Positions 207 through 9,563 of a stretch of 25,177 nucleotides of DNA are shown here, one piece after another. The translations under genes and the position numbers were made by a program. The notes beneath the pieces are model-generated. The model did no database searches, had not been told where the DNA came from, and worked only from the letters and a program-made list of their open reading frames with translations. The first letter of the stretch is position 1. Each line of letters begins with the position of its first letter. This DNA comes from Zygophlyctis sp. KS116 (lineage: Eukaryota > Fungi > Chytridiomycota). The stretch spans positions 1 to 25,177 of the forward strand of contig BAAFSQ010000139.1 in NCBI GenBank assembly GCA_054661495.1, read 5' to 3'.

Positions 207-860
207 ATGGGAATAGACGATGAATATATTTCAGAGGATGATCTAGCCCAATCTTATACTGATAATGTAAAATTACTGATTTCAGCAATAATCAATTTAC
301 CAGTTTGGACTAGAGTTTTCTACACAGCTCAAATTGTAAATATTAATACTATAATTCTAGATTCTAGGAATAATATTATCTATTCTATCAAAAGATGTAG
401 TAATTTGGGTTTTTGGACTTAAAATCGTGTTGGATTTACTATTTATAATTTTAGAACTTTATCAAAAAGAATTTACACAAAGGAAATGGATAAAGTTGAC
501 TGTAAGACTTAAGAATTTATAAATTTAGGCATTCTTATCAACTGCATCTACTACAATAATGATTGGAGTATTTTATCTATATTATGGATATGGATCTTTT
601 GGAAATACTCATCATTGTGCCATGGCGTGTAATATTAATTATCCATCTTCAAGAATTTGTGAAAATAGTAATAACTGTACTATACAACAATTTAATGATT
701 TTATAAATACTCAAACTAAACTAGACTTGAATACATGGTATTGTATGGGATTTTTATTGTCAGATGTAAGTTTGTAAAGTAATTTTAGGTGATTTTGTTG
801 CATTTACAAACAGGAGAATTAGTAGAATATATTTCTCTTGGATATTTTTCAGGAATCTAA
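207..860 (+). CDS. Hypothetical multi-pass membrane protein with Cys-rich loop (about 192 aa, 4 exons; true start may be further upstream)
   Basis: Exons 207-335, 361-501, 529-765 and 789-860 join in frame through GT-AG introns 336-360 (25 nt), 502-528 (27 nt) and 766-788 (23 nt). The product has several hydrophobic segments (ILGIILSILS, VVIWVFGLKIVLDLLFIIL, IMIGVFYLYYG, WYCMGFLLSDVILL) and a loop HHCAMAC...RICENSNNC. The frame is open back to 156. No family recognised. Confidence 0.6.
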
Positions 861-1299
861 TGCCCAACTATTCTCTTTAAGAATGGCAGCTTGTTCTTCA
901 TTTGTAAAATCGTTTTCTAATTGAAGCATTTCTCTAATTTGAGAAGAGGTTTTTCCACTAATACGATGAGCGATTTCAAGTGTTCCGGCTTCTAATAAAG
1001 ATTTAATATCTAAATAGTTGGCTGCTAGAATTAAATCCATGAGATCAAGAGATTCAATCTTGACAAGGAAATCCTAAAATTATTATAATAAATTATACTT
1101 GTTTGCATGGAGTAGAACAATACTCTAAAACAAGAGATAATACAGATGATTTTACATTATGAAGTGGAATAATGGAATTTGAGGTTTCATTTAAATCATT
1201 ACACATTGTTTTTAATAGATCGGACTGAAAGGCAATACATTTCTCAACTTCAAAAGAAATAGAATCACTAGAAAGTAGAGTGATCTTTTCACCATTCAT
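849..1299 (-). CDS. SKP1: SKP1-family SCF adaptor, divergent (141 aa, 2 exons)
   Basis: One intron, 1074-1098 (25 nt). BTB/POZ N-terminus KITLLSSDSISFEVE...IPLHNVKSSVLSLVLEYC, and C-terminal LILAANYLDIKSLL...GKT...IRE...NDFT.EE...KENSW, which are SKP1 hallmarks. Confidence 0.9.
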
Positions 1300-1328: not shown

Positions 1329-3430
1329 TTATTGACCATCATAAGCCTCAAACGTAGAAATTGCAATGGCAAAGGCTTCAAGTGGGGTCATTGGCCATCG
1401 GACATCCAATGAAAATTCATCAGGTCCACATCTTCCAAATTGCATAAAAATAAAATCATCTATTTAATTAAATGGAGTTTAAAATACCTTGGGTTTCAGC
1501 AGAAATTAACTGAAGATTCTTGACTGATGGTTGAGTTACTCTACCACCAAAATTTAAACAATGAGATTGTGTTGTTTCATTCCATCTAGGATTCTTATTA
1601 CGAAGTTGAGCCCATTTAACCGTGTTTTTTGATTTCATATCAAACAGTATATCAGAAGGTTCAAATGTTCCCTACAAAAATTAAATTATTGAGATTACTT
1701 CATTTTCAGGTAAATCAGAATTAGGTATAGCTACAGATAAAACTCTCGGTAATACATTTTTAGTCTAAAAGTTAAAATTTAGAAAATATACATATTGAAC
1801 ACATGCCAACTCTTTCATTGGAGCATCAGGGTTAGATGATGTATAACTTCTTGCATCACAGAGAATAAAAGTATTTCTTCCAAAATTTCCTTTAAGTCGT
1901 CCAAGATAGTGATTTGAATTTTTAGAGGTTTCTTCAATAGAGTCGCTAATCACATAAGTTGCTAAAGCAGACTTTTTGCGTTTTCTAGCAGATAAAATAA
2001 AAGAATTATCTATATCATTATGCATGTAGAATGTAGGATAAGCTTTTTCTAATAGTGTTGATTGTCTAAAGATGCGACATCTTAAAACTTGATCTTTTGG
2101 GATTCGGCTAATTATTAAGTTAAAGATAGAATACTAGAAAACAGAGTCAACATTTAAAATTGGCTTAATTGATGATGAGGAAATTTGATCAACATTTGTT
2201 AAAGGGCCTTCATCATTAGAAGATTCAGCAATATCAGTAGGGATATGTTTAATTAATTCATCAGAAGAGGCTCTAGGTGGAAGAGGAGGAGCGTCTGTAT
2301 TTTCCAATTCGTTTGTAATAATGTCTGTTTCTCTATATTCAATATTAGATTCTTGTGTGATTTCTTTTTGAGGAAGTTGCGGTAAAGTTTTAATGTTCGT
2401 ATTTGGTGTCTCTGTTTTTTGAATGACTGGAGCTTCTCTAGTCTTTTTGCTTGCAGCCGTCCGAATAATGTCTTGTTCATTTTTCTTTGAAGATTGATGC
2501 AATGAGTCTACTAATCCATTACATAAAATTAGATATTACATTTGGGCTTTTCACTAACTTGAATATTATCTTTATCTGTTTTTGAATCACTAAAAGACTT
2601 TGAATCTTTAGCTTTTTCTATTTCCCCTGACCATCCAGATTTTAGAGGCGATGGCCGTTTCTGAGATTCAACATTTGTTTTTAATCTTGTTTCCACTTCA
2701 GTTGGTTTATTTGCAGTTGAATCAAATCTAACTTCCTTTTTAGGACTTGATGATCCTTTAAAAGTAACCTTTTCTTGAATTTCTGACTCTATAGTATTCG
2801 CTTCTTGGTATATTGGAGCCACTTCAACTTTGATACACGTTTCTTTGAATGGTAACTTTCTTGGACTTAGATCTTGTATTTCTTTTTTCTTTGAGATGAA
2901 ATCTTGATATCCAGCACTTTCTAAAGATGTATTCCAATCAAGAATTCCATCATTGAAAGTTGCATATTCTTCAACCTTTGAATCCATCATTCCAACATTT
3001 TTGGCAAGTTCCTTTTTTGGAGTTATTGGTCTCAATTTTGGCGCTTCATTTGACATGATTCCAGTAGCGATCCTACTTTTAGGCCTTGATTTAACTTTAA
3101 TAGGAGTTTGAGTCGCCAATTGCTCTATAATAGAGTCTGATCTATCCATTCCAGTATCTGTTGAAGAACAGAGATCATCATTTGCCTCCATTTCAAGACT
3201 CTTTCTTAGTCTATTATAAATCTTGTATTGTGATGCTATTATAAATTTAATATTATAAATACCAATTTCAGGATTTTCACTTATATCGGCTTTTCCAGGC
3301 TTCCGTCCGGTCGCAGAGAAAAATCCATGTTCATATTCCTTGATGATCTTTTTTATGACTATCAGTTGCTGTTTTGTATTATCCAGTTGATTCTCTACAG
3401 ATTAGATTATAAATTACCTGATTTCATCAT
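1329..3430 (-). CDS. Tubby-domain protein with N-terminal Sld2/RecQ4-N-like domain and long disordered linker (about 636 aa, 8 exons)
   Basis: Introns (plus-strand coordinates) 3395-3417, 3236-3262, 2508(or 2511)-2539, 2108-2134, 1765-1791, 1672-1698 and 1460-1487 give one continuous frame. Tubby motifs: [72 protein letters not shown]...[13 protein letters not shown]-terminus: [43 protein letters not shown]. Confidence 0.88.
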
Positions 3431-3439: not shown

Positions 3440-3942
3440 TGTTTAGTGTGGCCCGAGTAGATCTCTGATGTCATGAGTGCATTACTCATTCCGCTCACGA
3501 CGACTTATAAGCATTTCTAGCAGTAAATCGTTGGATATAAGATATTTTGATGACGCTCTAGTATTGATTTTATTATGAAAACTATACAATATTTCTTAAG
3601 TTTCGAATTTCACAGAGTATTTGTCGAGAGTTCCATTCTCTTTTCTTACACCAGAGACATATCTACATGGAAAAATAACTAATCATAATACAACGCATTA
3701 ATGAGAAACATAGTAATCACAGTGGAAACTAGAGATGTGACAAGACTGTTTAATGGGCTTCAGTGTAACTATGATGCTCTGCATTTTCAGAGTACGATTA
3801 AGACTGGAGGATCCTGTCCCAATTGTGAAATATAAATGGCCTTGATATTTATTATCTTGTAATTTCAGATAACCAATAATGCTTATAGCACAGAAGCAGA
3901 TCTGATCAATAATGAGTCAAAAAGTCTGAAAATTCTTCTAAA

Positions 3943-5775
3943 ATGTTTCTGATTGGATTGATTCTTCCTATTGCTCTATCGCAAGGAATCATTGGTAGTT
4001 GGGATGTTATCGGTACTTCTGGAGTAGTTTGCATTCATACGATGCTATTGCCAAATTCTAAACTGTTGTGTATGGAAAGACCTCACATGCCTCCTTATTC
4101 TATAAACTCTCAAACAAATGGAAATACTGTCGTTGAGATTGATCTGAAAGGAGGGCAGCCAATTGATGGATCTTGGCAGGCAATATGGCAACAAAAGCCA
4201 ACAATCTATAATACATTTTGTGCAGGGGTAAGTCAATTATTACTAAATATAGCATGTTCAATTGGGTAATGGATCTATACTTGTTATCGGCGGAGATAAT
4301 CAGTCAATGTCAATGAATGGGGTTGATTATATAGTGGATGGAAGAGCTACACGTCAAATATATGATCCGGTTACTGGATCTTGGAATTACTTGCCTCATA
4401 TGACTACAAATAGATGGTATCCAACTGTAGTGACAATGAAGGATGGAAAGTAACTTTTTTCCTTGACGAGAATAGTGCAATTATTTTTTCAGGTACAACA
4501 GCTAATTTGGACTTTGATTTGGTTGCTAAAGGAGAAAATAATAATAATCCTACATATGAATATTGGCCTGCAAAATCAGGGAATTGGCCTATGGAATTAG
4601 ACATCCTCAAATGGGCTTATCCACATGTTTTATATCCAATGGCTTTTCAACTTCCTTCTGGAGGAATATTCTTATTGGTGTCAAATAAAACAATCATTAT
4701 TGATCCAGAAACTGATCGGATTTCTTATTCTGTGCCTGATATGCCTGAAATGGATCATTCTCCTTGGATTTATCCTCATTCACCGCATATGATTATGTTG
4801 CCTCTGTCAAAGGATACAGGTTATAAGGCTATTTTACAGATTTGTGGTGGTTCTACTCTAGCTGTGACTCAAGATATATCTGATAAACCTGCTTCACCGA
4901 TGTGCTGGAGAATAAATCCAGATGATAGTAATCCTACTTGGACAAGAGTAGATGACATGCCTCATGCTAGAGTTATGCTTGATGGTGTATTACTTCCAGG
5001 TATTTTATTTTAATTGAATTCAGATGGGAAAATTCTGTATCTTAATGGTGCTGCATTTGGTGTAGCTGGAGGAAACCAAGGTCAAGTTATGTACGCTCGT
5101 GACCCTGTTTTTGCTGTAGACTTGCATGATCCTTTTGCTCCATCTGGTTCACAATGGACTAGTCTTGCAAATGCATCTATAGCTCGTTTATATCACGACG
5201 GAGCTCTTCTTTTAGAGACTGGACATGTTATTACTTTTGGAAGTGAAATGAAGAATTACATGGATTATTACCCATTTAGAAAATCTTCCTTGTGTTTCCC
5301 AGCTACAGAAACTGTTTGTTCAGATGCTTTTGAATATCGAATTGAACGATTTACTCCTCCATATTTACTCACTGGGAAGCCAAGACCTGTGATAAAGGAG
5401 GCCCCTTCATTTTTGACTCATGACTCAACCTTTAAAATAACTATGGAATCTCCTGATAAAGTTGATCGTGTTACATTTATACGATACAGCACTACTACTC
5501 ATAATCTAAATACTGATCAACGTTTTATTGAATTAGAGATCTTGGGTAAATTAGGATCAACAGTATATCTCCAAATGCCTCCTAATTCAGCGATTGCTCC
5601 TCCTGGAAACTGGCATTTATTTGCATTATCTCAGGGTGTTCCTTCGGTTTCTAAAACCGTGAATCTACAAATTGGGGACTCAACACGCATTGAAATTCCA
5701 AAGAAGGCAAGGAATGGATCAATGTCATTAGTAAATTGTCTTTGGATTTTGTCCTTGTTAGTGGCAATTTTATAA
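3943..5775 (+). CDS. Copper radical oxidase, glyoxal oxidase-like (CAZy AA5_1), copy 1; signal peptide plus GPI-like tail (585 aa)
   Basis: Introns 4228-4252, 4450-4475 and 5000-5023. Cofactor/ligand motifs FCAGH (Cys), RWYPT (Tyr), RLYHD (Tyr-His) and STTTH (His). C-terminal Ig-like domain with APPGNW. N-terminal MFLIGLILPIALS-QG. Hydrophobic C-terminus LVNCLWILSLLVAIL. Confidence 0.92.
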
Positions 5776-5965
5776 TACTTTATTCATAATTTTTAAAGTT
5801 GACTCTCTTGTACTTTAATGGCTTTAGTCATCATGGATAAACATGATTCATTGATTCGATCGAAAAGCCCACAAAATTTTCCCTTGTTCATGAAAATTCT
5901 CGATCCCGCCGCATTCATAGATTGACGACTGAAAATTTTGCTGTGGCACTTTAGCGGCTTTAAAA

Positions 5966-7711
5966 ATGTCTCTGGGTTCATGGAATGTGATAGGAATGAG
6001 TGGAGCTGTATGCTTACATTCGATCCTCTTGCCAAACAATAAAATACTCTGTATGGAGCGGCCAAGACCATCGCCGTATCCAATGAATCCATATACGAAT
6101 GGTATACTTTTTTCTTTAATATTTAGGATCAATGGTTACAGAAATCAGTCTTATGGACGGAAGTGGAAATTATAATCCAACTTACAAAAGTGTTCCTTAC
6201 CCAACATCTGCATTCTGTGGAGGACATGCTCAAATGGCTAATGGTTCAATTTTAATGTTTGGGGGGGATGTAACCTCAATTCCAAACATTGTATCAGATG
6301 GAACTAAAAGTCGGCGTATATATACTCCTTGCGATGGAAAGGATTGTACAGGGAGATGGAGTACTCTTCCTGATATGGCTCATGGGAGATGGTATCCAAC
6401 AGTTGTGACTTTGGCTGATGGTACAAACATAATTTTTACTGGTGTATATGATTACTTGGATGATAAAAGAACTGATAATAATAATCCCACTTATGAATAT
6501 TGGCCTCCAAAAGAAGGAAAAGGAGAAATTGAAATGGAAATTTTTAAATGGGCGTTTCCTTTTCATCTCTATCCTCCAGCTTTTCAATTACCTGGTGGAG
6601 ATGTCTATCTTTTTGTAGCAAATAAATCAGTTCTTCTGGATACTAAAACGGAGCAGGTTAAAAATAGTATACCAGATTTATTGGCTGATGATCATCAACC
6701 TTGGATTTATCCTTTTTCTGCAAATATGGTGATGTTACCTCTATCTCCGGCTAATAATTATAAGGCCACTTTACAAATTTGTGGTGGATCTAAACGTTCA
6801 AGTGAAATTGCATCGTCAGATTGTTATCAAATAACCCCTGAGGATCCAGTTTCTAAATGGAAAAAAGTTGACAGTATGCCACATGGTCGTGTGATGATTG
6901 ACGGTGTTTTAGTATTTTTTAATCTTTTTTTAATATTTAGCTCCCTGATGGAACTTACTTGGTTGTAAATGGTGTTGGATGGGGGCGCGCAGGTGGTTTG
7001 TATGCTGCTGATTCACGATGGGCGAAGGATCCAGTTTTCCATGCTGATTTATTTGATCCTAAAGCTCCTTCAGGACAACAATGGCTAACTTTGGCTAAAG
7101 CATCAGTCTCTCGCCTATATCATTCAACTGCTATTCTTCTTGAAACAGGTGAAGTACTTACTGCAGGAACTGAATTTCAAAATTATGTGGATATGGATGG
7201 GCCTCGTGCTGCAGCTTGCTTTCCTAATGTCAATGTTATGTGTACTAATCCTTTTGAATATCGCTTAGAAGTTTTTACTCCGCCATATCTACAAACTGGA
7301 AAACCGAGACCGACTATTTTATATGCTCCAAAAAATTTAACATACAAGTCTTCCTTTATGATTAAACTTAAATCATCAGGGACTATCAGTAAAATTTCTT
7401 TTGTTAGATATGGCAGTAGCACACATAACATCAATACAGATCAACGATTAGTGGAATTGCAAAATTTAGGCCAGAAACAAGATGAATTATATCTAAGAGC
7501 TCCTCCTTCTGGATCTATTGCACCGCCGGGTAATTGGATGCTATTTGTATTTCAGGATGGTGTGCCATCAATTGCAAAGACTATAAGACTTGAAAATGGT
7601 CCAGAAACTTTTGTTAATGTTCCAGTAGACGCTAGAATTTCTCACGCCTACAAAGTAGATATTGCATTTCAAGTATTAATGATTTTGATCGCTGCATTTT
7701 TCCTGTTGTAA
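5966..7711 (+). CDS. Copper radical oxidase, glyoxal oxidase-like (AA5_1), copy 2; no visible signal peptide (563 aa)
   Basis: Introns 6102-6126 and 6912-6940. Motifs FCGGH, RWYPT, RLYHS, SSTH and APPGNW. Hydrophobic C-terminus IAFQVLMILIAAFFLL. The ATG is in AAAATG context, as in copy 1. Confidence 0.9.
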
Positions 7712-7816
7712 TAAAATTCATTATGACATATGATTTGCGTTTTTATCATCTGATCGGCGGCAAAATTTATGGCGTGGAAACGCCACGATCTATTCCAAAA
7801 TTAACTCCTGCTGAAA

Positions 7817-9563
7817 ATGTCAACAATGGGATCTTGGGATGTAATTGGAACATCTGGAGCTGTTTGCATTCATACATTCTATCTTCCTTTAAACCGCATT
7901 GCATGCATTGAGCGCCCGCATGAAGCACCTTTTCCTCCGAACAGCAATACTAATGGAAATCCTGCTACTGAAGTTAGACTCACCAATGCTGATGGGGCTT
8001 GGGATGCAAAATGGAATTCTGTGCCAATTGCCTCCAATGCTTTTTGTGGAGGCCATGCACAAATGGGTGACGGATCAATCTTATTTGTGGGTGGAGATGC
8101 TAGAATTGACACTGGACTTCAAGATGGTAGACGATCAGTTAGACTTTACACTCCTTGCAACACTACAGAATGTGTATCTGGAAGTTATAGTGAATTGTAT
8201 CAAATGACATCCGAAAGATGGTATCCGACTGTAGTCACACTCAAGGATGGAACAGCTATCATTATTTCAGGAACAAAGGATAACTTGGACTTGAATAATA
8301 TGAAGCCAATTTCAAATCCTACATATGAGTATTATCCTCCAAAAACTGTTGGTGAATGGCCTAAAAAGCTTGATATATTGGAGTGGGCTTTCCCATTTGT
8401 TCTTTATCCTATGGCTTTTCAATTGCCTTCTGGAAATCTTTTCTTATTTGTCTCTAACAAGTCCATTATTCTGGATACTAAAACAGATGAAGTCTTCAAT
8501 ACAATTCCAGATCTAGTTGTGCCGAATCACTGGCCATTCATTTATCCTGCATCTCCTCACATGGTAATGCTTCCTCTAACAAAGAAAAACAATTATGTTG
8601 CAACATTTTTGTTGTGCGGTGGAAGTGAAATTGGAAGTCAAGGTGAAGTTTATAGTTCAAAGAAATGTTTTAAAATTACTCCAGAAAGTCAGAATCCAAC
8701 ATGGTCCCAAGAAGATGATATGCCTGCCCAACGAGTCATGCTTGATGGAGTTATTCTACCAGGTATGAAGTAAATTTTTAATAATAGATGGAAAAATTCT
8801 TTACGTAAATGGTGCAGGCTATGGTTTAGCCGGAGGATCTCAAGGTGGGGATACATCAATCGCAGGAGATCCAGTCTTTGAATCTTCGCTTTATGATCCT
8901 GAAGCTCCTTCTGGATCCAAGTGGTCTAATTTGCCAAAGTCAACCGTAGCAAGGCTCTATCATTCCGGGGCAATCTTGACAACTGAAGGATTTGTCGTTA
9001 CAACCGGATCTGAAATGCAAAATTATCTCGATGCTGACCCAAATTGTTTCCCAAAAGGTCTTAAAAACATATGTACTTCCCCATATGAATATAGAATCGA
9101 GAGATACACACCATACTATTTGACAACTGGAAAGCCCCGACCCGCTATAATTTCTGCGCCATCAGAATTGACATTTAATTCCTCATTCTTAATTGAAATT
9201 AAAACCGGTACTGGTATAGATAAAGCCACTTTGATTAGATATTCTACAACTACTCATTACACAAATACAGATCAGAGATATGTTGAGCTGGATGTCATTG
9301 GATTATCAGATAGTAAAGTAGGACTTAGAATGCCAGCAAATGGTGCTATTGCCCCTCCTGGAAACTGGATGCTTTTTGTTCTTAAAGAAGGAGTCCCTTC
9401 AGTTGCCAAAACAATACGTTTGCAAGATGGACCCCAACAAGATATTGCTGAAGCTGACATGAAGTCTCTACGTCCTCTTAAAAACTCTGCCAAGGATCTT
9501 AAAATAGAAAGATCACTTTGGATTACTATTTTCTCTCTATGTATGCTCACCTGGATTTTTTAG
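7817..9563 (+). CDS. Copper radical oxidase, glyoxal oxidase-like (AA5_1), copy 3; no visible signal peptide (573 aa)
   Basis: One intron, 8763-8787. Motifs FCGGH, RWYPT, RLYHS, STTTH and APPGNW. Hydrophobic C-terminus LWITIFSLCMLTWIF. Confidence 0.92.

Follow-up and report, generated by a model that had tools for sequence, protein, structure and literature searches.

Analysis of a 25,177-nt stretch of DNA from the chytrid Zygophlyctis sp. KS116 (contig BAAFSQ010000139.1, positions 1 to 25,177), from now on referred to as the window, revealed a gene in which a Sld2/RecQ4-N-type domain, a linker and a Tubby domain are joined. The fusion is real and, by architecture and orthology, the gene represents in this genome a Tubby subfamily that extends across the chytrids, with about 35 orthologues showing the Sld2N + Tubby architecture in seven chytrid orders, including a Polychytriales fragment. 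Tubby proteins thereby gain a third kind of N-terminus, in addition to the IFT-A helix of animals and the F-box of plants, and it is conserved throughout a fungal phylum. The same architecture is an instance of the Sld2-N/FAM13 fold in use outside RecQ4.

The gene occupies 3430-1329 on the minus strand, where eight exons form a single frame of 637 amino acids (1914-nt CDS, one terminal stop). All seven introns are bounded by GT..AG and are 23-29 nt long, the joined frame contains no internal stop, and the two small 5' exons splice onto exon 3 in frame as originally predicted. Introns of chytrid orthologues measure 59-255 nt, marking the present organism as a strongly compacted flagellated fungus. 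Intron 1 is in phase 1 with a counterpart after codon 5-7 in Spizellomyces and Batrachochytrium, while intron 2, if read as coding, would add a 9-residue insertion relative to all aligned orthologues. The acceptor of intron 3 lies at 2511 or 2508 (tandem TAGTAG) and the frame stays intact with either. Profile and similarity searches were made per exon, with the joined model translated solely as a frame check, and structure predictions were carried out on natural orthologues (P0016 and P0005:22-75).

Coordinates of the Sld2N-Tubby gene and its sequence features in the window.
Feature	Position	Strand	Evidence
Exon 1 with start codon	3418..3430	-	In-frame splice
Exon 2, helices 1-2 of the Sld2/RecQ4-N-type domain	3263..3394	-	PF11719 (E 7e-8) and alignment
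Intron 2, 27 nt, stop-free, in frame	3236..3262	-	Position and phase shared with two chytrids
Exon 3, N-domain helix 3 and first part of disordered linker	2540..3235	-	Frame and RNA
Five full CDK consensus sites (starts 3107, 3023, 2867, 2747, 2651)	2640..3107	-	Lineage-specific
Family linker helix M2, aa 158-172	2865..2909	-	Family HMM, E 6e-5 over six exons
Intron 3, joining both halves	2511..2539	-	GT..AG also present in relative L007
Exon 4, disordered linker lacking an in-frame ATG	2135..2510	-	Linked to exon 5 by an RNA contig
Exons 5-8 (2107-1792, 1764-1699, 1671-1488, 1459-1329), Tubby domain and stop	1329..2107	-	PF01167
RKRKK basic patch, aa 447-451	1972..1986	-	Alignment to TULP1/TULP3

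Transcript evidence consists of short pieces from three lake/estuary metatranscriptomes. Contigs 100% identical to exon 3 cover 3065-3215 and 2859-3003, and in one contig the intron at 2134-2108 has been removed, which connects exon 4 with the Tubby exons. None of the three metatranscriptomes yielded a contig across the 2539-2511 junction (2508-2539 in the original prediction) and intron 3 lacks a positional match in Spizellomyces and Batrachochytrium, both of which would agree with two separate genes, namely a short Sld2 gene with its stop codon (TAA) at 2531-2529, followed by an independent Tubby gene. Such a split is very improbable. About 20 nt separate the upstream stop from exon 4, the first in-frame ATG does not occur before aa 434, and the competing out-of-frame ORF starting at ATG 2480 is interrupted by a stop codon in L007, a relative from a lake metagenome that is about 95% identical. 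In L007, all seven splice pairs are kept and the exon-4 frame stays open via balanced 3-nt indels. Exon 3 moreover holds the M2 motif typical of fused orthologues, and the introns of exons 1-2 agree with those of fused genes. In four orthologues (P0016, P0031, P0110 and P0034), single uninterrupted ORFs in their contigs run across the fusion, which is thus independent of gene prediction. The one-gene fusion proposed from the DNA alone is supported by orthologue architecture, shared introns and the absence of an in-frame start in exon 4.

When the Tubby sequence of exon 5 was searched against 1.8 billion representatives, the best matches were proteins of 650-990 aa, nearly all of which have PF11719 N-terminally and Tub C-terminally. 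Named members belong to Spizellomycetales, Rhizophlyctidales, Chytridiales, Cladochytriales, Synchytriales and Rhizophydiales, the Polychytriales member being a Tubby-only fragment. In an exon-5 tree, the window sequence falls inside a family clade with support of 100/99, apart from animal and protist TULPs; the tree comprises 105 columns and leaves the place of the window sequence within the clade unsettled. Six of the seven intron positions and phases are matched in Spizellomyces and Batrachochytrium, two upstream and four downstream of intron 3. The window gene thus has the Sld2-N domain, M2 helix, clade-specific Tubby domain and shared introns of the subfamily. Its tree orthologues in Batrachochytrium (BATDEDRAFT_90997 / F4P937) and Spizellomyces (SPPG_03586) have the same domain order and M2, whereas the window protein differs from them by a Trp-to-Tyr replacement, five CDK sites and the lack of a detectable M1 motif. 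A further fragment encoding Tubby and M2, with its N-terminus cut by the contig end, is present in an Olpidium bornovanus assembly that is non-axenic. All named hosts found so far, in searches of limited reach, are flagellated fungi. Dinochytrium (P0023) encodes two Sld2N-Tubby paralogues, the divergent one grouping with a Phlyctochytrium planicorne protein (P0015) and weakly with the window protein.

Several family members are labelled 'DNA replication regulator SLD2' in UniProt, and Pfam/UniProt annotations display the architecture in many chytrids. In addition, Gaggioli et al. 2014 mention, without giving a function, an Sld2-like protein of Batrachochytrium that has a 'tubulin-like domain', in a fungus that keeps a separate Sld2-RecQ helicase (PMC3926958). 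The protein with the 'tubulin-like domain' probably belongs to the chytrid Sld2N-Tubby family, Pfam 'Tub' having been misread. The earlier statement that no such architecture was known to be described consequently holds in part only. No functional study of a chytrid Sld2N-Tubby protein was found in the literature. Likewise, no paper joining Sld2 and tubby or naming family gene identifiers was found, and the accessible parts of the literature on tubby in chytrids contain nothing on the family. These results suggest that both the UniProt labels and the 2014 wording need revisiting.

The N-terminus of the window protein matches the PF11719 Drc1-Sld2 profile with an E-value of 7e-8 (33 bits, cut-off 28) at model positions 4-48 of 416. 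The PF11719 match stays within positions 4-105 of the model and there is no helicase domain; some true Sld2 proteins lack region II. Using a family profile, the RecQ4-N structure 2KMU was the sole significant match in the PDB (E 5.5e-8), which, together with PF11719, bears out the predicted Sld2/RecQ4-N-like N-terminus. The conserved Trp of the signature is replaced by Tyr, as originally noted. As a single-sequence query, the window N-domain returned nothing from the PDB, and Foldseek plus VIA-align with a 54-aa model gave generic helical matches only, 2KMU not being among the matches listed; word-seeded N-domain searches are insensitive. The model (P0005:22-75) consists of three helices with a pLDDT of 95. 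In the ESM Atlas, its TM values are 0.89 for Sld2, 0.89 for FAM13A, 0.87 for FAM13C and 0.83 for a RecQ4-like helicase and, being about equal, cannot separate Sld2 from FAM13. Precomputed matches to PF26116 (FAM13) overlap PF11719 on many orthologues, those to PF26116 being mostly weak and those to PF11719 strong, and the sequence favours Sld2 over FAM13. The caution that FAM13-type repeats resemble this motif is thus justified for the fold and less so for the sequence. Compared with FAM13A/B/C, whose C-terminal helical domain (PF26116) has the same predicted fold, the chytrid domain is present in single copy, is N-terminal and is not accompanied by RhoGAP. With fungal Sld2/Drc1 and RecQ4-N it shares the region I signature, the three-helix fold and the basic residues of helix 3, but the family lacks the helicase, a T84-type motif and a conserved CDK cluster and is fused to Tubby.

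The PF01167 Tub profile is matched by exon 5 (E 3e-18), exon 7 (E 7e-17) and exon 8 (E 2e-12), and the Tubby exons match TULP1/TULP3/tubby structures with E-values of 8e-11 to 3e-9. Profiles and the orthologue model agree on a C-terminal Tubby barrel with a buried terminal helix. Judging from the alignment, the RKRKK patch is the probable equivalent of the second PI(4,5)P2 site of tubby (tubby 301-305; PMC9451155), so that a complete Tubby domain retaining its basic patch was correctly recognized at the outset. Animal TUB/TULP1-3 similarly combine a Tubby domain with RKRKK, a long disordered linker and a host with IFT-A. In contrast to them, and to TULP3 as IFT-A cargo adaptor, no IFT-A helix-loop is detectable in the window protein, which has a folded Sld2-N-type domain in its place and belongs to a separate clade. 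A second, short Tubby gene in the assembly (C447:4227-4846) is divergent, lacks RKRKK, has no evident N-terminal extension and sits on a very long branch in the tree.

Apart from one helix, M2, the linker is predicted to be disordered. The five full CDK sites noticed originally (aa 92, 120, 172, 212 and 244) are present and exceed the 0.4-0.7 found in shuffled sequences (P 1e-4 to 5e-4). CDK control as a general trait was not upheld: 34 orthologue linkers contain 32 full sites where 31.6 are expected (median 1), and L007, while keeping four of the five, has lost one. By sequence, the cluster is a property of the window's own lineage and not of the family. Conserved across the family are two linker motifs, new here, termed M1 (L-P-x-N-F-K-L-R-K-S-T-I-A-A-G-P-I-x-T) and M2 (E-F-x-D-F-M-x-R-R-K-Q-L-E, a helix with pLDDT of about 80 in the orthologue model). 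A family HMM detected M2 and not M1 in the window protein. S/T-P sites beside M2 (13/33 against 8.1 expected) are not convincing. Using a profile of the TULP IFT-A helix built from 17 non-chytrid Tubby proteins, which recovered held-out TULPs with up to 21 bits, no family member was found (<3 bits), and hhalign of this helix to M1, M2 or the N-domain was null. At its end, M2 has a run of basic residues and then Leu-Glu, a loose resemblance to K41-K42-R43 of TULP3 and nothing more.

Everything beyond architecture and conservation in the following functional reading we infer. With a little less than even confidence, we favour an adaptor of the flagellum or of membranes that is anchored by PI(4,5)P2 and has co-opted an Sld2-N module, over both other membrane readings considered below. 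The Tubby barrel would dock on PI(4,5)P2 membranes and collect membrane cargo by analogy with TULP3, M1 and M2 in the long linker could act as docking motifs, and the basic-ended M2 helix is a candidate IFT-A contact. The three-helix N-domain may derive from a duplicated Sld2/RecQ4 gene and would now serve as an interaction module rather than a CDK-switched replication initiator. By this analogy, the likely job of the protein would be membrane-protein delivery at the zoospore flagellum. Adaptor function is suggested by the flagellated hosts, although that restriction rests on searches of limited reach, by orthologue linkers without CDK enrichment, by the separate Sld2-RecQ helicase of Batrachochytrium and by FAM13, which has the same fold and whose long isoform is reported to regulate cilia. 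The assembly further encodes IFT57 and IFT122, in line with the zoosporic fungus originally proposed. TULP3-docking positions on human IFT122 include the acidic E1052, E1217 and D1218 (PMC11346432), at which the assembly IFT122 has E, E and E, while two of the five docking positions have F for Y1058 and G for S1061, which weakens the adaptor reading.

The adaptor reading is also weakened by two observations that bear on replication. Sld2 equivalents of RecQ4 R43/K49 are needed for origin binding (PMC3458545), and the R43 position is K in 37/37 scored orthologues and the K49 position K/R in 37/37 (K and R in the window protein), an invariance of helix 3 that a purely membrane role would not need. 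Secondly, no other Sld2-N or RecQ4 was found in the assembly, whose RecQ genes (Sgs1-like, RecQ1/5-like and Hrq1) lack Sld2-N and which contains a Sld3-like gene. Given 12.7 Mb in 1175 contigs, searched exon-wise, RecQ4 may have been missed and this lack is weak evidence, reflecting either true loss or an assembly gap. The genome's second PF11719 match (C25) comes from an acidic stretch of a splicing-factor-like gene and was rejected, and a PF25143 match on C314 is false. Together with the five CDK sites, the helix-3 invariance, the single Sld2-N found and the Sld3-like gene would suit a membrane-tethered replication or nuclear factor whose N-domain would still bind DNA or Dpb11/TopBP1 and whose Tubby domain would hold it on PI(4,5)P2 until lipid hydrolysis, for instance at encystment, lets it go to the nucleus. 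Tubby is reported to be released to the nucleus when PIP2 is hydrolysed (Santagata 2001). The window protein may be the only Sld2 of its lineage, with CDK sites perhaps regained. This alternative is rather unlikely, however, with a family devoid of a CDK cluster and T84-type motif, a Pfam match mostly limited to region I and a proper Sld2-RecQ in Batrachochytrium. A bolder and quite improbable version is a PI(4,5)P2-gated Sld2, in which Tubby would keep a working DNA-/Dpb11-binding Sld2 domain at the flagellum or membrane of the zoospore until encystment sets it free, making the protein the lineage's only and again CDK-controlled Sld2. If true, flagellum loss would be linked to S-phase entry.

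The undetected IFT-A helix, which counts against the flagellar adaptor, would be natural for a PI(4,5)P2 adaptor acting at the plasma membrane or in endocytosis, with no role in the flagellum or in replication. Plant Tubby-like proteins function without cilia and likewise join Tubby to an unrelated N-terminal module, and exon 4 contains a proline-rich PPLPPR motif. Their F-box was not matched in the window exons or orthologues, however. A SKP1 gene (849-1299, minus strand) begins 30 nt past the Tubby stop, an adjacency kept in L007 but absent in Spizellomyces and Batrachochytrium, hence local only and probably reflecting genome compaction. As the hosts found so far are moreover all flagellated, this third possibility appears distinctly unlikely. 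Both Spizellomyces and Batrachochytrium are transformable, making a move of a replication-initiation domain to the flagellum, or its gating by a membrane lipid, directly testable.

Elsewhere in the window, a tandem array of at least three glyoxal/galactose-oxidase-like genes (3919-9563, plus strand) is arranged divergently from the Tubby gene. On another contig of the assembly (C148), an ORF of 640 codons that encodes a P-loop domain (L013:3508-5427) and looks Crinkler-like by eye is located directly upstream of a RecQ gene.
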